64,000 nt of DNA from the IMG/VR virus record IMGVR_UViG_3300036853_000446, positions 343,635 to 407,634 of that record; one strand, written 5' to 3'. Shown piece after piece: positions 68 to 40,698 of this stretch (the first letter of the stretch is position 1; each line of letters starts with the position of its first letter). Made by a program: the position numbers and the translations under genes. The notes below the pieces were generated by a model that made no database searches, was not told the origin of the DNA, and worked only from the letters and a program-made list of their open reading frames with translations.

Positions 68-475
68 GTGGCGACGCCGATCTCAGAAGGGGTGTCCGCA
101 GGGCGCTTGCTTGTCTCGACGCACTGCGAGAGCGCCTGCAAAAGAGCTGACGGTTTGAACCGCCCTCCGACGTGGCTACGGCCACATCGCGAAAACGAGC
201 CTCTGCCGCCTCGAGGAGCGTTCGAGTACTGGAGACGAGCGAGCGAGCCCGTGCTCAGCTTCCTCCTCGACGAGCCCCGGAATTGGAAGACCCTGGATCA
301 ATGGGCCAAGGACACCCGCTTTGGCAAGAGCCGTCTTCGTCACGTGCTCGCCTGGCTCGAGCAGCGCGGAGAAGCTTACACGTTCACGCAATTGGAGGGA
401 CGAAAGGCGATCATCTATTGGGCTATTCCAGAGACGTTGAAGCCGTGTACCGCTTTGCGACCGCCGCAGAGGTGA
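68..475 (+). CDS. hypothetical protein, possibly small winged-helix-like; start uncertain
   Basis: ORF track; C-terminal half looks globular (LDQWAKDTRFGKSRLRHVLAWLEQRG); converges on the 2H gene. Confidence 0.35.
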   Translation: MATPISEGVSAGRLLVSTHCESACKRADGLNRPPTWLRPHRENEPLPPRGAFEYWRRASEPVLSFLLDEPRNWKTLDQWAKDTRFGKSRLRHVLAWLEQRGEAYTFTQLEGRKAIIYWAIPETLKPCTALRPPQR

Positions 476-1025
476 AACGGTCAACAACCCTCCGGGCCAT
501 GGCCGCCACCACCGCGTTGGTTGGGTTCAGTGCCAGGGGGAACGTCACCGTGAGCTTGCGGTCCCCCTCGTCACCGCCCCACATGCTGATCTCGTGCGCG
601 CCCCATTCGATGGTTGGGATTCGAAACTCTTCGACGGCGTCGGGCGCGTAGGCCAGGGTCACATGCGGCCTAAACGTACGGAATTTCTTGTTGAACTCGA
701 CGCCAGCCTCATCGAACGCCGCCACCAGATTGTTGCGCAGCGTGTGCAGGTCATCGGACTCGATGTGCGCGACGACAGGGTGTGACTCGTCGCCGCTAAT
801 GGGAAAGCTCGCGACCCGCGACGTCCCTACGGTGAATGGTCGCGTCCGGGCCGTGACCGCGTAGGTGGCCTTGATGGCTTCGGCGAGCATGTCTATAGGC
901 ACGTCGTCACCGATATAAATCAGCGTAATGTGCTGGTGGTCCCTTGGCGTCTTGTCCCCGGGGACTTCAATGTCGCTCAAGAGACGTGACGTGGGCGCGG
1001 GAATCGGCAGTCCGATCATCGCCAT
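423..1025 (-). CDS. 2H phosphoesterase (2'-5' RNA ligase / Acb1-like fold)
   Basis: Two HxT motifs (QHITLIY, PHVTLAY) about 90 aa apart; C-terminal tail ARRVVDRF/AAVAKRY. Confidence 0.85.
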   Translation of the reverse strand: MAMIGLPIPAPTSRLLSDIEVPGDKTPRDHQHITLIYIGDDVPIDMLAEAIKATYAVTARTRPFTVGTSRVASFPISGDESHPVVAHIESDDLHTLRNNLVAAFDEAGVEFNKKFRTFRPHVTLAYAPDAVEEFRIPTIEWGAHEISMWGGDEGDRKLTVTFPLALNPTNAVVAAMARRVVDRFTSAAVAKRYTASTSLE

Positions 1026-6915: not shown

Positions 6916-7573
6916 ACAGAAGGCCAACGCTCTCCTCGAGAAATCCACTGCGGAGTGGATCCTCGGCTCGGACGAGGCCGGTTATGGTACACTCGCGGGC
7001 AGTCTGGTCGTCGTCGCCATGGCGGTCCGTCGATCGTGGGGCGATCCTGAGGTTACCGATTCAAAGGTGCTTTCTGACACAAAACGTCGGAGCATCGTGC
7101 GACGCTACCGTGGGGCTGAGGACGTCTTCAGGGTCGTCCACACGACGTCTCCTCGAGGGATCGATGAGGTGGGTGTTTGGACCTCACTGATCAACGCTCA
7201 CAATCAGGTGCATGAAGCTTTAGAAGCCAAACTGCGAGCCGTAGACCCATGGGGCGAGCTGCTTCACATCGTGGATGGTCTGGAGAACGCGCGAAGACGC
7301 CTCGACGCCCGTTTCACCCCACTATCCTCGGCGGACCTCTATGTTCCGGCCGTCTCGCTGGCGAGTTGCTTCGCCAAAGTCGTTCAATGTGAGTTGATGG
7401 ATCTTGCTGCGAAAAGCTACCCAGGATATGGCTTCGAGAGGCACCGCGGCTACGATACGCCGCAGCATCGAGAGGCGCTCGCGCGACTCGGGGTCACTCC
7501 GATCCACCGCAAGAGTTACCGGACTATCCGGGACCTGCTGAGCGCCGATGGCTTCTCTGCTGATCGTGGATGA
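6812..7573 (+). CDS. rnhB: ribonuclease HII
   Basis: GSDEAGYG, DSK, IVDG, HRGYDT...H motifs of RNase HII. Confidence 0.88.
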   Translation: MTLKRVAKLASNSNASVAKVASQDQDLKRPAPAHKQKANALLEKSTAEWILGSDEAGYGTLAGSLVVVAMAVRRSWGDPEVTDSKVLSDTKRRSIVRRYRGAEDVFRVVHTTSPRGIDEVGVWTSLINAHNQVHEALEAKLRAVDPWGELLHIVDGLENARRRLDARFTPLSSADLYVPAVSLASCFAKVVQCELMDLAAKSYPGYGFERHRGYDTPQHREALARLGVTPIHRKSYRTIRDLLSADGFSADRG

Positions 7574-7949
7574 TGACCTCATGGTCCAACGCGCTCTGAT
7601 ACGTGCCCTTCGCGAACACATCTGCGTTGCAGCTTGCAACGGCTGCGAGGCCCTCCGATTGCTCGGCGTCCAGCCCTTTGACCTCGTCATCTCGGACGTC
7701 GACATGCCCGTGATGAATGGCCTCGACTTCTACAGGAAGGCCCGCGAGCTTTTCCCGAACCTTCGGATCATTTTCCGGACGGGATCCAAAGTACCGGGAC
7801 TTGCGTCGATCGGGGTCCCGGTCCTACCAAAGGACTGGCCTTTGACCGACACGCTCGAGGCGATCGATTCTTTCGTAACGCGCGGTGTAACGCACATGGA
7901 TGCCGGCACTCTTCAAGGCAAAGCCCTTTCTGAAATGGGCGGGCGGTAA
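7548..7949 (+). CDS. single-domain response regulator (CheY-like receiver)
   Basis: LIVDDD, LVISDVDMPVMNG (phosphoacceptor Asp), IFRTG, LPK. Confidence 0.88.
   Translation: MASLLIVDDDLMVQRALIRALREHICVAACNGCEALRLLGVQPFDLVISDVDMPVMNGLDFYRKARELFPNLRIIFRTGSKVPGLASIGVPVLPKDWPLTDTLEAIDSFVTRGVTHMDAGTLQGKALSEMGGR
7883..7889 (+). promoter_or_regulatory. CGGTGTA motif, 10 nt before dam start
   Basis: Exact heptamer. Confidence 0.6.
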
Positions 7950-9289: not shown

Positions 9290-10396
9290 TCAGAGGGTCA
9301 GCTCAAAGCGCTTCATCACCGACGAAGGTATCGGCATGTTGAACACGTACGTCGCGAACGTCTCAGCGAAATCCTCACGCACGTTCGTCGCCGCGTAGCT
9401 CGACACGGTTTCTACCTTCACGGATTTCAGCCGAACGTATCGGTGATTGGGGCGCACGACTTGCCGTTCGACCCAAGCTCCCGCCTCGCTGTAGGCTCGC
9501 CAGTAATCCTTCGGTGAGGCTCCGATCTCCTTCAGATACTCGGCGACGGGAAGCCCCTTCTCTCGGAGAAATTTCTTCGCAGCCGCCGGCCTGAACTCGC
9601 CCTTCACGAGTGCTTGAAACAGATCCTGCCGCTGGTCGACGGTAAGTCCGCCCGCCGAGTACAGGTCCTCGTACTGCTCTTGCTGTGCCGTCGAGAGATG
9701 CTTGTGCCATCGCCGGTGCCCTATCTCGTGTACCAGCGTGAAGACGTCCGAGTGTTGATTTTTCGCATCTACGGTCAGCGCGATCGAGTCGCTGGCCTTA
9801 AAATATTCCCCTGCAACGCCAGGGCGACTCACTTTCGTATCCAGCAGGACTTCCCCGTACAGCAGGTCTCCGAACCCCTTTGCACGGACACGATCGGAGG
9901 CTTTGTCCAGCACCTCGAGGGGCTCGGCGTACTCCGACACGGAAAAGCCGTACTTGTTGACGATCTGCCATGGCCCATGGCTGAAGGTCTTCTCAACCTT
10001 AGCGTAGCCTTCGATCCGGTCTGCGACACGGCTCAACGACTTGAGCGTGTCTGCAAGCGACTCGAGGTGGTTGTGAATATGAATGTCTTGGATCGTCTCG
10101 TCGAGTTCGAGAGATCGGGAGTCGAAAGCTCTCTGAAGGTGCCGCAACCACCCGATCACGTTTTTCAGCTTCCGCTGCTCGTCTGGCCGCGAGAACTTGA
10201 TGTTGTCGAGCGCCGACGCGAGTGGCGCCAGCTCCCGTCCAAGTTCGAGGAACCGCTCCTTGGCTGCGGGAATGTTCTTCGCCTGGAGGAGGGCTTCGAT
10301 TCGCGGCCGCGCCGCCCTGAACGCTTGAATGGCGTCGTTCACGAGCTGTTTCGAGGCGTAGCGGGTCGCGACCCGGTACACCATCGTACTGGTCAC
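9290..10396 (-). CDS. zincin metallopeptidase paralog C with N-terminal RVATRY tag
   Basis: LVHEIGHRR...SSYAATNVREDFAETFA; GTG start overlaps the upstream stop (GTGA). Confidence 0.8.
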   Translation of the reverse strand: MTSTMVYRVATRYASKQLVNDAIQAFRAARPRIEALLQAKNIPAAKERFLELGRELAPLASALDNIKFSRPDEQRKLKNVIGWLRHLQRAFDSRSLELDETIQDIHIHNHLESLADTLKSLSRVADRIEGYAKVEKTFSHGPWQIVNKYGFSVSEYAEPLEVLDKASDRVRAKGFGDLLYGEVLLDTKVSRPGVAGEYFKASDSIALTVDAKNQHSDVFTLVHEIGHRRWHKHLSTAQQEQYEDLYSAGGLTVDQRQDLFQALVKGEFRPAAAKKFLREKGLPVAEYLKEIGASPKDYWRAYSEAGAWVERQVVRPNHRYVRLKSVKVETVSSYAATNVREDFAETFATYVFNMPIPSSVMKRFELTL

Positions 10397-11526
10397 AGAA
10401 GCGACTCCATGATCGCGCCAATGCCCGGGGGCAGGTTCTTCCCCATGACATAGTGCGCGAATGCTTCCGCAAAGTTCTCCATCCAGCCGCCTGTCTTCCC
10501 GTAGCTCGTGACGTACTCGGGCTCGCGGACGACCTCCTTCGTCTTGATGGTAAAGTCCTTGCCGCTGACGACTGCCTTGCGCAGCTCCGCTTCGACGTCC
10601 TCCCCCTTCACGAACCGAACGCCAAGCTTTTGGGCAACGGAGCCAGCCGGCGTGCCGATGGTATGCCCCATCCACTCCAGGAACAGCTCCGATGGTTTCG
10701 GCTGGGGCTTGCCGTCACGCCGCGCCTTCGCGATGTCGATGTATTCGGCCGCGACGTTCTCCCGAGCCCCGGCGTCATATGTGATCTCGCGGTGCTCGGG
10801 CGTCGTGGAAAGACGCATGAACTCGTCCCGCTGGTCCTTGTTCTTCCAGAACTTGTAGAAGTACCGGTGCCCAAACTCGTGGCACAAGGCGTGGACGTCT
10901 CCGATGTTGCCCCGGGCCTTGAGGCTCAAGTAGACAACGTCGTTGGTCACATTGTAACGAGCGGCCGCCATATGATTCGACAGATTCTTGACGATGAAGA
11001 CCCGCCCGTAGAGGACCTTTGGAAACTTTGGCTGGAGGATCTTGTAGGCCTTGTCGAGCGCCTCGAGACATTCTCGAACTTTAGGCCCCGTGACTCCGTG
11101 AGGCACGATCTCGAAAACGCCGTGCTGGAAGGTCTTGTCGTCGGCCTTGTTGATGATACCCTGCAGCCATTTGATTTCGAACGCGAGTTGGCCAAAAAGC
11201 TCCTGAGGAGCTGCGTCTGGTTCGAGCACCAGTCGTCCAAGAGCGCGAATGATGGTCAATGCTCTCTTCTGATGGCGGGGGCCGAGGGCGGAGTACCAGT
11301 CCGCGTCCACAGACCATCGGTCACCGTTACGTATGACATCGAGTTCCGCGAGCGCCTGCTCTACCAGGGCCACGTTGAACTTACCCGTACTCAGGCCCTG
11401 AACGACGGGGCCCAGAGCGCCGCGCGACAGGATGTATCGCGCCGCTACCCGCCCGGTCATCACAGCGGCTGCGGCCACCCGCGCCTTTACAGCCCACCGC
11501 GTGGCCACCCGAGCCGTCAGGTTCAC
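10393..11526 (-). CDS. zincin metallopeptidase paralog B with repeated N-terminal RVAxR tags
   Basis: LCHEFGHRY...TSYGKTGGWMENFAEAFA; GTGA overlap with the upstream gene. Confidence 0.8.
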   Translation of the reverse strand: MNLTARVATRWAVKARVAAAAVMTGRVAARYILSRGALGPVVQGLSTGKFNVALVEQALAELDVIRNGDRWSVDADWYSALGPRHQKRALTIIRALGRLVLEPDAAPQELFGQLAFEIKWLQGIINKADDKTFQHGVFEIVPHGVTGPKVRECLEALDKAYKILQPKFPKVLYGRVFIVKNLSNHMAAARYNVTNDVVYLSLKARGNIGDVHALCHEFGHRYFYKFWKNKDQRDEFMRLSTTPEHREITYDAGARENVAAEYIDIAKARRDGKPQPKPSELFLEWMGHTIGTPAGSVAQKLGVRFVKGEDVEAELRKAVVSGKDFTIKTKEVVREPEYVTSYGKTGGWMENFAEAFAHYVMGKNLPPGIGAIMESLL

Positions 11527-12884
11527 GCGACACCTTGAAGCGACAGATAGCGCTCTGCCACTCGCGTCGCGGCCAGTTTGGCCCCACCCAACCCACAAAC
11601 CTGGCTGAAGAACTCCCGCGTCCATGGTTTGACGGCGCGAGGCCCCTTCGTAATCCACAGGCGAAAGACTTCGGCGAAGGCTTCCATCGGGTTCGTATTG
11701 CCGTAGTCGGTCGTCTCTTCGATCAGAACCGGCTCCCCTACCTTGGTCTCGAGAAATTTCGTGTAGGCTGCGGGGTCAAAGACTTTCACGTCCCAAGGCA
11801 TGAGAATCATCTTAGCTAGCTCTCGAAACTTGGCTTCATCCGCGGCACCCCCCGCGTGAGGCAGAACCGCCCGTAACCGATCGTCGTCCCCGTCCAGAGC
11901 CCTTAGTGTTTGAGAGTCAACCTTACGAATGATCAGGTCGGCGAACCTACGCACGTCGTCGCGCGTGATCTTCACCGACCGCGACATCATGACCTCCTCC
12001 CAGTGGTTTCGTGCCTGCACCGGCAATTCCCGAAAGTAGAAGCGGTGCCCACACTCGTGTACGAAAGTTCCGTGACCAGAATCGTCTCCCACGATTCCGA
12101 GCGAATACATGCTCAATGTGTCGGTCGCGGGCTGATACATCCCGGTTGTTGCCCACTCTTTCGCCTTCGTGTCGAAGTCGACCGTTACCGTCAGCCCTTT
12201 GACTGCCCCTCCGAATCCAGACCGTTTGATCTCGTCGACTCGTTGCCTGAGGCTTCGAAGGAAGGACTCGAGATCATTCTGATCATCATCGTCACGTCCA
12301 AAGTTCAGTAGCACGACGTGGACGCCGCCTACCTCCAAATGGTCGACCGGGATGTAACGCTCGACTTTGCCTTCTGGTGACATTTCAAGGTAGTCGTCGA
12401 TTTCCTTCAGCGCCTTCGTTGCCTTCAGTTGATAGCGCTTGATATTGCGGTCACGTTCGTGTCGAAGCTTCGACCAGTCGGGCTCCTTGCTCGGGTGGAA
12501 GACGGGGAAGAGCTGGTGGGCATCGAGTTCGTGCCTGAGGTCCCACGCGCTCGTTCGAATCGCCTTCTCCATGTGGGTTTCGGGCCGGTCCGACGCATGG
12601 GTCTTCGGGAGGAGTTCGCGATAAACCCACTCCTCAAAGTTTTCCCGAAAGTTACGAAACAGACTTCGGGCCTGCTCGAACACGGCGCGCGCATCACGAA
12701 CGCGAGTCACGTCCGCGTCGTAGGGTACATCGGCGTCGATGGAGCGGTAGATCTTCGTCATGATGCGGAGGTCTTTCCGCCACCGATCAACAGTACTCTT
12801 GTCGAGGGTCCTCGCGCTTCGACCGCCGGTTGACAGATAGCGATGGACTAGACTCGCCGTGAGAGGTTCTCCGTCCATGATCAC
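11523..12884 (-). CDS. zincin metallopeptidase paralog A
   Basis: FVHECGHRF...TDYGNTNPMEAFAEVFR; C-terminus TRVAERYL; GTGA overlap with the topoisomerase stop. Confidence 0.8.
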   Translation of the reverse strand: MIMDGEPLTASLVHRYLSTGGRSARTLDKSTVDRWRKDLRIMTKIYRSIDADVPYDADVTRVRDARAVFEQARSLFRNFRENFEEWVYRELLPKTHASDRPETHMEKAIRTSAWDLRHELDAHQLFPVFHPSKEPDWSKLRHERDRNIKRYQLKATKALKEIDDYLEMSPEGKVERYIPVDHLEVGGVHVVLLNFGRDDDDQNDLESFLRSLRQRVDEIKRSGFGGAVKGLTVTVDFDTKAKEWATTGMYQPATDTLSMYSLGIVGDDSGHGTFVHECGHRFYFRELPVQARNHWEEVMMSRSVKITRDDVRRFADLIIRKVDSQTLRALDGDDDRLRAVLPHAGGAADEAKFRELAKMILMPWDVKVFDPAAYTKFLETKVGEPVLIEETTDYGNTNPMEAFAEVFRLWITKGPRAVKPWTREFFSQVCGLGGAKLAATRVAERYLSLQGVA

Positions 12885-13699
12885 CGCTCCAGATAGATTT
12901 CTGCGACGCAGGCCGCGGTCTTGACCATCTTGTCCATCACGCTGCCATCTTTCAAATACGCATCGGATAACCCAGGCACGAGGTATTGATTCTCCAGCGT
13001 ACCGGCCTCGTGGCCAACAGCCTCTGCTGTGGTCTCGAGTGCCTTCTTGAACTCCTTCTTGAGCTGAGTCTTACGCTCTTTCGGATCGGTTGGAAGCTTT
13101 CCACCTTTGCTCCGGACCGCCTTGAGTTCCGTCTTCATGGTTTCGTTTGCATGAAGTCCGCGAATGTCCTTGGCACTGATGTCAAATTCGTCGAGAAAGG
13201 TATTCACCTTCTCCGCCGTGATCTTACCCCCTTCATGGCAGAAGAGATCGCCGTCTTTGCAGTTCTCATGAGCATGTTTGAGAGCCGAGACGAGGGCCTT
13301 GTCGGTCACGGTCTTCTTCTGCTTGACTCCGCTCTTGCCTGTGTAGCTGATCGTAGCCTTGGCCTTGCCAAAGCTCACGTGGCTCTTCTGCCACCCGGTC
13401 ACGCCCACGTGACCGAGTTCTTCCTTCGAAGTATCATTGCCGACCCGTTCCGCGGTGTGATCCATCAACCCGACGACGAGCGCCGTCAGGGCCGTCTCGG
13501 GGTCCTTTGACGCGAGGTCCTTCTTGACGCGGGCGCGGAGCTTGTGGACGCTCTTCCGCAGCTTCTCGAGCCGTTTGGCCTTGTCGCTGTTGCGCTTGGC
13601 AATTTGCCGCTCGGAATACTCGTAGACGACCGTGTCCGAGTCCGGGATTTTCTTCTTGGATTTGTAACGAGCGGCAACTCGGGCAGCAATGGACGTCAC
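12881..13699 (-). CDS. type IB DNA topoisomerase (catalytic core only)
   Basis: Catalytic pentad ERVGN (R), YTGKSG (K), KDIRG (R), AVGH (H), NQYL (Y). Confidence 0.88.
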   Translation of the reverse strand: MTSIAARVAARYKSKKKIPDSDTVVYEYSERQIAKRNSDKAKRLEKLRKSVHKLRARVKKDLASKDPETALTALVVGLMDHTAERVGNDTSKEELGHVGVTGWQKSHVSFGKAKATISYTGKSGVKQKKTVTDKALVSALKHAHENCKDGDLFCHEGGKITAEKVNTFLDEFDISAKDIRGLHANETMKTELKAVRSKGGKLPTDPKERKTQLKKEFKKALETTAEAVGHEAGTLENQYLVPGLSDAYLKDGSVMDKMVKTAACVAEIYLER

Positions 13700-13812
13700 C
13701 CCCCTGCCGCGGCAACAGAGGATTAGGGGCCGGCGATTCTGCGCGTCCGGCGAAACCCGTTCGGGTGACGGCGCGGCCGGGGGCTAACTTCCACTTGTGC
13801 AGCTCCCCTGGC

Positions 13813-15105
13813 ATGAGCCTCTCGGAGTCACCGTCGAACAATCTACCGGTCGCCATCTATCATGCCTTCGACCTGCCATTCACCGAGGTCGAAAGTCTCG
13901 TGGAAGTCATTGCAAAGCAGGGTTACTCTCACGTTCAGATCCCGCCCGCTCAGAAGTCGAACGACGCGGGCGGCGCGTGGTACGAGCGCTATCAGCCCGT
14001 TGACTACACCGTGATCGAGGGACGAGGGAGCGAAGCCGAACTCGAGAGTCTGACCAAGGCGGCCCATGCCTGCGGCCTGCGAGTGATCGCCGATGTCGTT
14101 TTCAACCAAATGGCCAACAGCCCGCCTTACTACGATAAGGAAACGGGCAAGCTCGATTTCCCCGGCTTGACTCCAGAGGACTTTCATCCCAAGAAGGACA
14201 TCGATTACGGGAACCCAGACCTGATCAGAGACGGTTGGCTCAACGGCGATTTGCCGGACCTGGACCATACCCGACCCGCCGTGCAGCGGCTTCAGAAGGG
14301 GCACCTCGCCAAGTTGCTCGCGCTCGGCATCGACGGCTTCCGGTTTGACGCCGCCAAGCACATGGCGATGAGCACCCTGCAAGACTATCTCGAATTCATC
14401 AACGTCGAGACCAACAACGAGGCCTGGAATTACCTCGAGGTCATCGAGGGCGATGGCATCTCGGGAGATAGCTACCAAAGCATCGCTGCCGTTACCGATT
14501 TTCGTCTCTACCATGCCGTCCGCGATGCCTTTTCCTTTGGAGGAGACCTAAAGAATTTGCGCATGCCACGCGGACTCGACGACTCGCGCAGCGTCCTTTT
14601 TGGCATGAATCACGACACCGATACGAACAATACCGAAGGCCTCAACGAGATGGCTTACGCCGAACGAAGTGATTCGCTGCTCGCAACGGCCTACGTGCTG
14701 GCCCGCGAGAACGGGGTCCCCCTCGTGCTCCATAGTGACAATCAGGTCGACTATATCCAGGCCGGCGCGAAGTTCCGGCAGATCATGCGAGCGAAATCGG
14801 GCGAAGGTCTATCCGTCACGGAGAATGTGCTCGGGATCGTCGAGGGAGACACGATACTCGTCATGGAACGGGGGACCGAAGGACTCTTCATCGTCAACAA
14901 GGCCGCAGAGACCTTCGATATTTCGAAGCTCGACGTGACGTTTACTCACCTCGGTGGGCGCTACCGCGAGCTGCGCCACGGCTTTACGATGGACATCGAA
15001 CGGAAAGACGATCGGAAGGCCATCGTCAACTGGGGCGATACGAATCGAGATGGCCTGTACATCAAGGGAAGGGATGCCCTCTATTTCGTCCGCGCCGCTT
15101 CATAG
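13813..15105 (+). CDS. GH13 alpha-amylase, no signal peptide
   Basis: Conserved regions DVVFNQ, GFRFDAAKH (nucleophile), YLEVI (acid/base), MNHDT; WYERYQPVDY. Confidence 0.9.
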   Translation: MSLSESPSNNLPVAIYHAFDLPFTEVESLVEVIAKQGYSHVQIPPAQKSNDAGGAWYERYQPVDYTVIEGRGSEAELESLTKAAHACGLRVIADVVFNQMANSPPYYDKETGKLDFPGLTPEDFHPKKDIDYGNPDLIRDGWLNGDLPDLDHTRPAVQRLQKGHLAKLLALGIDGFRFDAAKHMAMSTLQDYLEFINVETNNEAWNYLEVIEGDGISGDSYQSIAAVTDFRLYHAVRDAFSFGGDLKNLRMPRGLDDSRSVLFGMNHDTDTNNTEGLNEMAYAERSDSLLATAYVLARENGVPLVLHSDNQVDYIQAGAKFRQIMRAKSGEGLSVTENVLGIVEGDTILVMERGTEGLFIVNKAAETFDISKLDVTFTHLGGRYRELRHGFTMDIERKDDRKAIVNWGDTNRDGLYIKGRDALYFVRAAS

Positions 15106-38974: not shown

Positions 38975-39610
38975 TCAAAAGGCGAAGTAGACGCCCGCGT
39001 TGACGTTGTGGAGGGGCTCCGTCCAACCGATTCCGTATCCCGCGTAGATACCGAAGTTGGTGGTGAGATCGAACCCGAGCCCTGCCCCGACGCTGCGAAA
39101 GCCGGCGGCGACGTTGAAATTGACCCACTCGAAAAAAGCCAGGTCAATCAAGATGCCCGCATCGACGCCGCTCTCGAAACTGCCGTGCGAGAGCTTGAAC
39201 GGGAGATAGCTGAGATATGCCTTGGGTCGAAAGCGGAAGCCGTAGGTCTCCGGAGTCTTCATACCGGCGGTGATTTGAACCTCACCGGTTGCGTCGACGT
39301 CGAGATGGCACCACTTCATCCGAATCGTGAACGGCCTTTTTGGGTCGGCCCCCGTATAGAAGACGCGACCGTCTTCGTCGGTCACGATCACCACTCGGTC
39401 GACATCGAAGACGGGTTTTTCGTGTTCGAGGCATTGGCGATCCCTCGCAATCGTCAAGAAGGTGTCTAGGTCTTTCTGAGGGAGACAGACGTAGCCCTGG
39501 GGAGCTTTGCAAGGGTCCTGCGCGTCCGCGAAGGAGGGAGCCATCGCGGACGCCATGGTCAGCACGGTTGCCGTGAGGACGCGCTTTTGCAGACGCTGCG
39601 ACACCGTCAT
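38975..39610 (-). CDS. signal-peptide protein with C-terminal amphipathic beta-strands (outer-membrane barrel-like)
   Basis: Leader ending AxA (ADA); terminal ...FGIYAGYGIG...VNAGVYFAF ending in Phe. Confidence 0.6.
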   Translation of the reverse strand: MTVSQRLQKRVLTATVLTMASAMAPSFADAQDPCKAPQGYVCLPQKDLDTFLTIARDRQCLEHEKPVFDVDRVVIVTDEDGRVFYTGADPKRPFTIRMKWCHLDVDATGEVQITAGMKTPETYGFRFRPKAYLSYLPFKLSHGSFESGVDAGILIDLAFFEWVNFNVAAGFRSVGAGLGFDLTTNFGIYAGYGIGWTEPLHNVNAGVYFAF

Positions 39611-40698
39611 GCGGCATCCTCGACAGCGGCAGACTCCAGAATCTCTTTGAGTTCGGGAGGCGAGGTTACCACCTGGGCAAGCGCCTTCAGAATCGGTTTG
39701 CCCCCGCCGCGCATCTTCGTGATGACCTTGTGACTGCCCGGAGAGTAGTACGTCCCGAAGATGGCCTTCAGGATACCCTTCTTGTCGAGCGCCTTGGACA
39801 GCTCCGGGCCGAGCTGAAATTCACGGCCATTGACCGTAATCACAACGGGGTTCCCTTCCCCGAGCTTCCCATAGACGATGTTGATCCGAATGTCCCTCTT
39901 GCGGTTCTGCCAGGGGTCGTCCTCGCCAACCAATCCGAGCAGGCTGACCGCGTCCTTGAAGGAAACCGCCTTGGTCAGATGGTCATCCATGCGCTCGGTA
40001 AACTTGGCCCCTTCGGGTATCATGTTGACTTTGGCCCCGTAGCCCTTCTTCAACTCGTGCGGAAATTCCCCGTAGAGGTCTCGAATCACTTTCGGGGCGA
40101 GCGTTCGGAATTCCCCGCGGACCTTCCTTTGAAGCATCCACCACTCGTCGATGTCTTCTCCAGTGTATGCATTCCTCGCCGTGTAATGCTGGGCGGCGAC
40201 GAACACGTGGGTCTCTCCATCCACGCCATAAAGGACGTAAGCCGATGATCGGGTGTCACCGTACCCGCCATAGCTCGTCTGGGTCTTGAATTTCCAATCG
40301 ACCTGATGGACGCCCGCCTCGGCGAACGCCTCCTCGAAGGTGATCCGCACGGGATCTGGCTTAGGACGCCCCTTTGGATTGGCGATTGGGCCATCCCAGG
40401 GTTCCGTCTCGGGTGCCGGCGGATCGCGAGGGGCGCCTAGATCGCGGTCGGGTCGCAAGTGCCCCGTCAGAACGTCTTTCGCAATGTTGTAGGGCTTGAG
40501 GGCGGTCTGGTCCGCCGCCTCCGCCGGATTCTCCCGTAGGATCTCGGTGACCTTGGCCCTGTACGCCGTCTGCACCTGAGCATCCGTCGGTCTGTCCGTT
40601 GAAGGAAAACCTAGCGTCTCGAGCGCTTCGGCGTAGGTGAAAGCCTTGAAAACCCGGTAGCGGGTGGCGACGCGAGAAGCGATGCTGGGCATATCCAT
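39607..40698 (-). CDS. protein with J-domain-like N-terminus lacking HPD; RVATRY tag
   Basis: ALETLGF...DAQVQTAYRAK...ENP...YNIAKDVL. Confidence 0.6.
   Translation of the reverse strand: MDMPSIASRVATRYRVFKAFTYAEALETLGFPSTDRPTDAQVQTAYRAKVTEILRENPAEAADQTALKPYNIAKDVLTGHLRPDRDLGAPRDPPAPETEPWDGPIANPKGRPKPDPVRITFEEAFAEAGVHQVDWKFKTQTSYGGYGDTRSSAYVLYGVDGETHVFVAAQHYTARNAYTGEDIDEWWMLQRKVRGEFRTLAPKVIRDLYGEFPHELKKGYGAKVNMIPEGAKFTERMDDHLTKAVSFKDAVSLLGLVGEDDPWQNRKRDIRINIVYGKLGEGNPVVITVNGREFQLGPELSKALDKKGILKAIFGTYYSPGSHKVITKMRGGGKPILKALAQVVTSPPELKEILESAAVEDAA

Follow-up and report, generated by a model that had tools for sequence, protein, structure and literature searches.

A coupled operon of predicted lethal-factor-like zincins in a huge soil phage is best read as a split polyvalent protein that bears a new terminal tag, not as a diversifying array of duplicates

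Work on phage polyvalent proteins, in which several unrelated enzymatic domains share one chain, has indicated that their commonest domain is a zincin with variable inserts between its catalytic helices, has linked this zincin to anthrax lethal factor (LF) by HHpred, and has proposed injection of the proteins with the DNA (PMC5512222). In LF, the zinc ligands are His686, His690 and Glu735, and Glu687 is the base (PMC5668564). In a survey of jumbo phages by the authors of the polyvalent-protein study, the zincins mentioned are limited to SprT-like and ArdC-like ones and a single conserved zincin of group 1 (PMC7824862). The locus considered here lies within the window, the whole analysed stretch of 64,000 nucleotides, which comprises bases 343635-407634 of the 407,634-bp IMG/VR virus record IMGVR_UViG_3300036853_000446 (CheckV completeness 86%). 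It is a minus-strand operon containing a gene for topoisomerase IB (topo IB) and three genes, A, B and C, whose products have the motifs of zincins; a fourth such gene, D, lies elsewhere in the window. Many of these proteins share a short amphipathic peptide at one or both ends, referred to below as the tag. The G+C content is ~60% throughout the window, and the sequencing runs that contain the region are DNA runs from soil metagenomes only. Judged from the sequences of the phage and its relatives, the operon is best read as a polyvalent protein divided into separate genes.

Genes A, B and C are genuine genes, coupled in translation, and together with topo IB they make up an operon in the order topo IB, A, B, C (Table 1). 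Each of the last three starts with a GTG that overlaps the TGA of the preceding gene, giving the sequence GTGA at 12884/12881 (topo IB to A), 11526/11523 (A to B) and 10396/10393 (B to C), and each of these GTG codons is preceded, 6-13 nucleotides upstream, by a GGAG or AAGGTG-like motif. An earlier sequence-only reading of the stretch had already described A, B and C as three consecutive genes with GTGA overlaps, and the overlaps are indeed present on the minus strand. The GC content at the three codon positions of the four operon genes (GC1 ~0.63, GC2 ~0.40, GC3 0.69-0.78) is that of the window's known genes; long antisense open reading frames (ORFs) have mirrored values and were discarded as shadows. 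A programmed frameshift joining A, B and C was also considered, and no slippery heptamer was seen by eye at the junctions; termination-reinitiation is the simpler reading of the GTGA sequences. Scans for promoter-like and terminator-like sites around the operon gave nothing above chance.

The products of A, B and C all contain HExGHR followed, at some distance, by a helix with the pattern Tyr...E-x-F-A-E. Homology among them is detected by phmmer (B-C 6e-15; A-C 6e-6), and a jackhmmer search within the genome converges on 10 ORFs; an eleventh ORF, which falls just outside inclusion (E 1.3e-3), has the same motifs. In these 11 paralogs, residues H223, E224, G226, H227, Y334, E341, F343, A344 and E345 (C numbering) are invariant, and 18 C-type and 13 A-type sequences likewise show no change in any catalytic residue, the Tyr and the two Glu of E-x-F-A-E included. 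The spacing from the Tyr to the Glu is exactly 7 in 8 of the 11, with small indels in B, D and p245. The separation of the two catalytic helices varies: counted from the first His to the ligand Glu, it is 125 residues in A, 134 in B and 118 in C, compared with 36 in D, and spans 36 to 210 residues across the paralogs. The window's zincins have in common with those of polyvalent proteins that a variable insert separates the HExxH helix from the Glu helix. The earlier estimate of about 90-100 inserted residues is about right, and its description of these inserts as unrelated agrees with the finding that none of their pairwise similarities is significant (all BLASTP E > 0.01). It had also listed shared upstream blocks (KTFSHGPWQIV/KTFQHGVFEIV, LEVLDKA/LEALDKA and LLYGEV/VLYGRV); these are real in C and B, and in A they are only weakly kept.

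Sequence profiles place the family near LF. The best PDB match of a profile made from the paralog alignment is the LF catalytic fragment 2l0r (E 5.4e-4), and the family segment S-d-Y-g-k-t-n-i-e-E-a-F-A-E-a-F aligns with T-S-Y-G-R-T-N-E-A-E-F-F-A-E-A-F of LF (Y728, E735, E739). (It should be noted that the paralog profile is needed for this result; a profile of C orthologs only, run against the PDB sequences, gave nothing except a spurious farnesyltransferase match.) Pfam ATLF matches 5 of the 11 paralogs at E <= 1 (best E 0.0011), as does Peptidase_Mx, in each case below the gathering cut-offs, which are 27.4 bits for ATLF, 27 bits for Peptidase_Mx and 25.6 bits for Mx1. Peptidase_Mx is also found below its cut-off in 18 of 18 C-type sequences (best E 9.5e-6), with only the Glu helix aligned, and the C ortholog P0009 bears the precomputed label PF15887. 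No window protein matches Peptidase_M90 at E <= 1; the Pfam models that match the zincins at this level are confined to ATLF, Mx, Mx1, M3 and Reprolysin_3, and NCBIfam gives below-cut-off matches only. The 3182-residue relative P0023 does exceed the ATLF cut-off (29.1 versus 27.4 bits), while remaining under that of Peptidase_M90 (22.7 versus 26.2), and by its language-model features the smallest paralog resembles ATLF/Mx1/M90 clusters, with a score of 0.95. We regard it as very probable that A, B and C are zincins of the LF clan. Because the 11 paralogs do not reach the ATLF gathering cut-off, they form a separate family in the clan of ATLF, outside ATLF as defined.

The predicted structures point the same way. 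The AlphaFold model of C, made from 18 sequences, has a predicted local distance difference test score (pLDDT) of 82.4. It begins with a tag that is disordered to helical and with four long helices (17-132); these are followed by a beta sheet, the helix of HExxH (214-233), an insert of six short helices (236-314) and the Glu helix (339-351). Upon re-alignment it matches the LF catalytic domain with Z 11.0-11.5 and a root-mean-square deviation of 3.4-3.6 A over 153-158 residues; residues 131/135-368 superpose on LF 556-767, and the LF catalytic domain accounts for 14 of the 16 top rows. In a Foldseek-independent scan of 48,161 PDB representative chains with the C model, LF again ranks first overall (Z 11.1), and the other matches of the catalytic part at Z >= 8.5 are limited to PPEP-3 (9.5), PPEP-2 (8.7), the N-terminal domain of LF (8.7), the Peptidase_Mx protein 4l7a (8.7) and MtfA 3dl1 (8.5). 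Residues 183-436 of the A model (pLDDT 79.4) match the LF catalytic domain with Z 10.3-10.7 and PPEP-1/2 with Z ~10. With these models and the 2l0r match, the likeness to LF-type and MtfA-type HExxH...E zincins suggested by the sequence-only reading is borne out. The N-domains (C residues 14-130, window ~10007-10357; A residues 26-171) are modelled as four-helix bundles, and their matches are the FAT/PBD, talin and vinculin four-helix bundles at Z 10-11, a likeness that may reflect just a common helical arrangement.

With LF and PPEP-1/2/3 (MEROPS M34, Pfam ATLF), then, the phage proteins share the HExxH helix and a Tyr 7 residues before the ligand Glu of E-x-F-A-E; the segment S-Y-G-x-T-N-x-x-E-x-F-A-E-A-F is nearly identical in LF, and LF and PPEP provide the best fold matches of the modelled catalytic part (Z 10.3-11.5 and 9-10, respectively). 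However, identity to these enzymes is 16-20% over the aligned residues and under the Pfam cut-off, most of the paralogs carry 70-160 extra helical residues between the catalytic helices, the other domains of LF are replaced by the four-helix N-domain and the terminal tags, and the phage proteins are cytoplasmic, without a secretion or toxin-delivery signal. MtfA (M90) and Peptidase_Mx/Mx1 (Bacteroides 4l7a) belong to the same clan and have the same motif geometry (fold Z 8.5-8.7), but the match is weaker than that to LF, there is no N-terminal similarity, and the phage inserts are absent from the MtfA and Mx families. Among phage proteins, ORFs of jumbo phages annotated as M34 or peptidase are recovered as predicted-structure matches with E 9e-8 to 1e-5, namely Achromobacter phage Motura gp016 and ORFs of Pseudomonas phage PaBG and Erwinia phage pEa_SNUABM_5. 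Motura gp016 has HEFGH ... S-D-Y-A-T-T-N-Y-R-E-L-F-A-E with a long insert; in contrast to the proteins described here, identity is at most 24-28%, the jumbo-phage ORFs occur in one copy per genome as far as seen, and gp016 has no tag.

No catalytic residue changes among the paralogs and orthologs, which makes active zinc endopeptidases much the likeliest products of these genes, and from their sequences we consider that A, B and C are probably active peptidases. The two His of HExGH and the first Glu of E-x-F-A-E would hold the zinc and the Glu of HExGH would be the base; the Tyr stands 7 residues before the ligand Glu, and the family-specific helical insert lies between the two catalytic helices. 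A different role has to be weighed. MtfA has a regulatory binding role, and the N-terminal domain of LF, a degenerate copy of the same fold, itself matches the C model with Z 8.7, so that the phage fold might be a binding or titration module, as when MtfA titrates Mlc, or else a structural component of the virion. The invariance of every catalytic residue across the 11 paralogs and the C-type and A-type sequences makes such a non-catalytic function very improbable.

The sequence-only reading went further and took A, B and C to be a duplicated, diversifying array of substrate-specific proteases, and a recently duplicated tandem array under diversifying selection, caught up in an arms race against defence or signalling proteins of the host, would fit the many paralogs in the genome with their unrelated inserts and N-domains, the turnover of module content seen at operon position 2 of a relative (see below), and the 2H/Acb1-like phosphoesterase gene beside D. 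In a maximum-likelihood tree of 46 sequences, from which the genome's own duplicate database entries are omitted, A, B and C nevertheless fall into three separate clades (support 99-100). The sister group of B is the clade that contains p160 (genome 160384-161556), a gene ~190 kb away, and A belongs to the opposite half of the tree. External orthologs of most paralogs are 43-81% identical (C has 17, at 41-81%), whereas identity between paralogs in the genome is at most 39%, at most 30% for B and C, and undetectable by BLASTP for A. In addition, the C insert is conserved like the core, with a mean column identity of 0.69 and 16 invariant positions among the 17 orthologs, compared with 0.72-0.75 for the core. 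On these sequence comparisons, A, B and C are three of eleven old paralogs; a recent tandem array is contradicted for them by the tree and is improbable. The topo IB partner, the eleven genome copies, the polyvalent fusions in relatives and the shared tag lie beyond what the earlier reading had covered.

Residues 251-305 of the C insert (window ~9482-9646) have a weak similarity to Effector-associated domain 1 (EAD1). A death-like domain of this type was rejected as an assignment, the match being present in 4 of 18 orthologs with a best E of 0.0012, below the cut-off; it is a lead only.

The family is large and occurs on the genomes of huge phages. When 1.84 billion cluster representatives are scanned in full, 2961 clusters match at E <= 1e-3, and 429 do so at E <= 1e-30, with lengths of 284-3182 residues and up to 5 HExxH motifs per chain; the names of the 7 clusters that were checked are all uninformative. 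The phage contigs that encode relatives measure 320-530 kb, and each of the 5 examined has 3-8 matched places. Among deposited phage genomes, a tblastn search with C matches only an uncultured 485-kb phage and Motura, through gp016.

It is the relatives that show how the operon is related to polyvalent proteins. In the close relative L059, where C is 79% and topo IB 71% identical, the operon and its 4-nucleotide overlaps are kept (L059:3732-9113); its second gene, in the place of A, encodes a different HEMGH protein tagged at both ends, and its B ortholog has an extra N-terminal HELTH module. The B ortholog of another relative, L017 (57% identity), is part of a called gene of 592 amino acids with a further HExxH-bearing N-terminal region. 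Module content thus varies between relatives, and the L059 arrangement looks like a cassette-type exchange of modules. In the window, each module has its own ORF and stop, and no chain combines several unrelated enzymatic domains; in relatives, such chains are found (the L028 protein, P0023, P0035, P0130, P0134 and P0149). P0035 consists of topo IB (62%), a zincin and a C-like module (45%), P0130 and P0131 have an A-like module (49%) followed by topo IB (50-54%), and P0134 and P0149 have topo IB at the end. Other combinations are an A-like then a p205-like module (P0036), a p327-like then a C-like module (P0022), and one p205-like with three A-like modules (P0023). A further arrangement of unrelated domains is seen in a 381-kb IMG/VR record (L028:3484-12780, +), which encodes a protein of 3098 residues with a PolyA_pol nucleotidyltransferase, two zincins, one of which has an ATLF match, and topo IB, with five copies of the tag at its domain boundaries. 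(An HxT-like 2H motif, H-T-T-F-L-Y, is also visible by eye at the start of this protein.) Because topo IB and the zincins are fused in these relatives, they can be regarded as one functional unit; because the same modules are fused in related huge phages, the operon can be regarded as a polyvalent protein in pieces.

The proteins resemble the polyvalent zincins of Iyer et al. 2017 (PMC5512222) in being phage-borne, in having variable inserts between the catalytic helices and, in the relatives, in the presence of several zincins per protein fused to unrelated enzymes; unlike those, the zincins of the window are stand-alone genes coupled by GTGA. On a text search of that paper, topoisomerase turns up in the reference list only, and DnaJ and linkers nowhere; the topo IB and J-domain partners and the junction or terminal tag appear not to have been described there.

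The tag is an amphipathic peptide, S-L-A-x-R-V-A-x-R-Y-L, found at module termini and at fusion junctions. A form of x-A-x-R-V-A-x-R-Y-(L) stands at the start of nearly all of the paralogs, of topo IB and of the gene at 39607-40698; in three paralogs, one of them A, there is also a C-terminal tag, and in all ~25 proteins of the phage carry one. With a position matrix, 24 sites score >= 20 in the six frames of the genome, as against 4 in reversed translations (the matrix was made from 16 instances and seeded from the same genome, so these counts are partly circular), and 20 of the 21 sites in long ORFs are at a terminus. Outside this genome, 27 of 149 family representatives have an N-terminal tag, and shuffled sequences have none (0); relatives provide 68 distinct instances with the consensus S-[LI]-A-x-R-V-A-x-R-Y-L-x-A, and C orthologs retain the tag, sometimes in duplicate. 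An example of a tag at a junction is found before topo IB: S-G-R-V-A-A-R-Y-K-D-K-K directly precedes the topo IB domain of the L028 protein, and the topo IB of the window starts with M-T-S-I-A-A-R-V-A-A-R-Y-K-S-K-K. In tag codons, positions 1 and 2 are fixed and the third is free, which argues for selection on the peptide and rules out an RNA or DNA element. Nor are the C-terminal tags leftovers of gene fission, since two of them (genome 171064 and 325352) have no coupled gene downstream. The tag is, then, a short conserved peptide, selected as a peptide, at the termini of unrelated proteins.

The bearers of the tag are diverse. Three are related to one another (window 39607-40698, -; genome 339360-340571, +; genome 171064-172098, -): one has a true DnaJ domain with HPD and a C-terminal tag, and two have an N-terminal tag with a degenerate J-like domain immediately behind it. 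By BLASTP, the 39607-40698 protein matches the genome's true DnaJ-domain protein with E 1e-8 and the second paralog with E 2e-21. About 10 tag-bearing proteins have no family match at all, and PHROGs offers no useful match for tag bearers or for A to D. Two side observations belong here. A second coupled pair of zincin genes, p327 followed by p325 (genome 325352-328791, -), has a GTGA overlap, tags at both ends of each protein, and 39% identity between the two. One of the tagged proteins that lack a family match, of 409 amino acids (L044, genome 97850-99079, -), has a language-model score of 0.87 to clusters of ADP-ribosyltransferase toxins, the nearest being Scabin, pertussis S1, Tse2 and NarE; this is a lead only.

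Short terminal peptides that direct cargo are familiar from the T4 capsid-targeting sequence, the cargo-loading peptides of encapsulins and the encapsulation peptides of microcompartments. Like these, the tag is a short N- or C-terminal peptide on unrelated enzymes, an amphipathic helix, and sometimes duplicated; it differs in having no sequence similarity to them and in being found internally as well, at fusion junctions. We tentatively suggest that it is a new phage sorting or docking tag, which might gather ~25 unrelated enzymes to one destination or partner. The set so gathered would, if this rather doubtful proposal is correct, comprise the eleven LF-like peptidases, topo IB, the J-domain proteins and perhaps an ADP-ribosyltransferase. 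These enzymes might be brought to the inside of the capsid and so be injected along with the DNA. They might instead be bound by the peptidases, through the four-helix bundle that resembles FAT/PBD, in which case the tag would be a substrate-recruitment motif; the modelled N-domains may bind the tag as FAT/PBD/talin domains bind amphipathic LD-motif helices. In the models of C and A, the tags are helical, of low confidence, and not packed on the body of the protein.

The presence of the tag at junctions also bears on the main rival explanation, in which the zincins are processing proteases that cut the phage's own proteins at or beside the tag, releasing modules from polyvalent precursors or trimming tagged proteins in the course of packaging or afterwards. 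LF cuts near N-termini at basic-hydrophobic motifs, which would suit such a role. Tags lie at module junctions in the L028 protein (residues 184, 1578, 1888, 2352 and 2425) and in P0092, P0075, P0028, P0121, L020 and L041, and autoprocessing has been proposed for the zincins of polyvalent proteins, with phage P1 DdrB as precedent (Iyer et al., PMC5512222). However, the modules are already separate genes here and yet retain both the tag and an intact active site, the tag is also found at the two extreme C-termini that no gene follows, and eleven divergent copies per genome, or 2-5 per polypeptide, exceed what self-processing needs. We consider processing of tagged phage proteins unlikely as the main function. 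Because the modules are free-standing and there are many divergent copies per genome or polypeptide, action in trans on several substrates is likelier than self-processing alone.

Taken together, these findings suggest the following scheme. Each of A, B and C combines an amphipathic terminal tag, a four-helix-bundle N-domain and a predicted zinc endopeptidase domain of LF/MtfA type; the enzymes would act in trans, and their specificities would differ through the N-domain and the insert. Along with the rest of the tagged enzymes they would form an effector set, which would be deployed jointly, probably at an early stage of infection, and might be packaged together and enter the cell with the DNA. 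Joint deployment, in the sense of Iyer et al., is suggested by three observations: topo IB is coupled to the zincins, the tag is shared, and J-domain proteins, a 2H phosphoesterase and perhaps an ADP-ribosyltransferase accompany them; that the set is both jointly deployed and directed at the host we hold to be a serious possibility, somewhat short of an even chance. The explanation as a whole (a split polyvalent operon, trans-acting zinc endopeptidases and a joint effector set) is the one that we favour, though only slightly beyond the point of balance.

Several observations weigh against this explanation. The window's own zincin proteins never reach a Pfam or NCBIfam cut-off. A Foldseek search with the whole model returns nothing at E < 0.1 in PDB or AFDB clusters, although its lists are dominated by zincins; the LF match comes from a second aligner, and a Z of ~11 is solid for an alpha/beta domain and not overwhelming. 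No RNA run containing the phage was found, the phage being known from soil metagenomes alone. Finally, the stand-alone modules sit among genes of replication and nucleotide metabolism and not beside recognisable virion genes, and for this reason packaging is something that we purely infer.

Table 1. Features of the window and the sites of the tag; positions are those of the window, except in the last row, where they are those of the genome (G000).
Feature	Position	Strand	Details
2H phosphoesterase, LigT type	423-1025	-	abuts D, downstream; Pfam 2_5_RNA_ligase2 E 4e-13
Paralog D, 469 amino acids	1028-2437	-	HELGH and ESFAE; jackhmmer E 4.6e-20
Stand-alone response-regulator receiver domain	7548-7949	+	overlaps start of Dam-type methylase
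Cys-rich ORF, 102 amino acids	8961-9269	-	just downstream of C; HNH-like by eye (CxxC ... H ... CxxC); no Pfam match
Gene C, 368 amino acids	9290-10396	-	HEIGH 9716-9730; Y334; EDFAE 9362-9376
Gene C, tag core	10358-10375		
Gene C, four-helix N-domain	~10001-10348		
Gene C, catalytic domain	9293-9994		
Gene C, helical insert	9422-9712		
Gene B, 377 amino acids	10393-11526	-	HEFGH 10867-10881; ENFAE 10465-10479
Gene B, N-terminal tandem tags	11494-11511, 11434-11451		full cores; degenerate copy in between
Gene A, 453 amino acids	11523-12884	-	HECGH 12045-12059; Y394; EAFAE 11670-11684
Gene A, N-terminal tag	~12831-12863		degenerate
Gene A, C-terminal tag core	11547-11564		
Topoisomerase IB	12881-13699	-	operon gene 1; Pfam Topoisom_I E 8.7e-26; GTGA overlap with A
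Topoisomerase IB, N-terminal tag core	13664-13681		MTSIAARVAARYKSKK
Alpha-amylase-like gene	13765-15105	+	divergent from operon
Tag bearer with degenerate J-like domain	39607-40698	-	domain follows N-terminal tag; tag core 40657-40674
Further tag sites in genome (~18)	e.g. 99041, 162061, 171073, 229732, 246595		

Besides the receiver domain and the alpha-amylase-like protein of Table 1, genes near the operon and D encode an AAA_28 protein, RNase HII, a Dam-type methylase and a DHH/DHHA1 protein. The 2H phosphoesterase at 423-1025 has a weak match to Acb1 (anti-CBASS), below cut-off, and its pairing with D is also found in L017. Of ten large ORFs at 36-64 kb, only one has a Pfam match, to an SNF2 helicase; nine large ORFs of 363-1398 amino acids at window 41881-63992 have none.

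For a large group of huge-phage proteins that had no name, and that amounts to ~3000 clusters at 50% identity, these results supply an assignment by structure and by family. They indicate that polyvalent proteins and coupled operons of single modules are interchangeable forms of one system, and they link topo IB and J-domain proteins to it. The tag is a handle with which the co-deployed protein set of an uncultured phage could be listed from sequence alone, and with which its receptor could be sought. Should host proteins be the substrates of the peptidases, a genome with eleven specificities would offer a wealth of new points of interaction between phage and host; and if the proposed role of the tag is true, the effector sets that huge phages inject would come in two forms, a single polyvalent chain or separate, tagged proteins.

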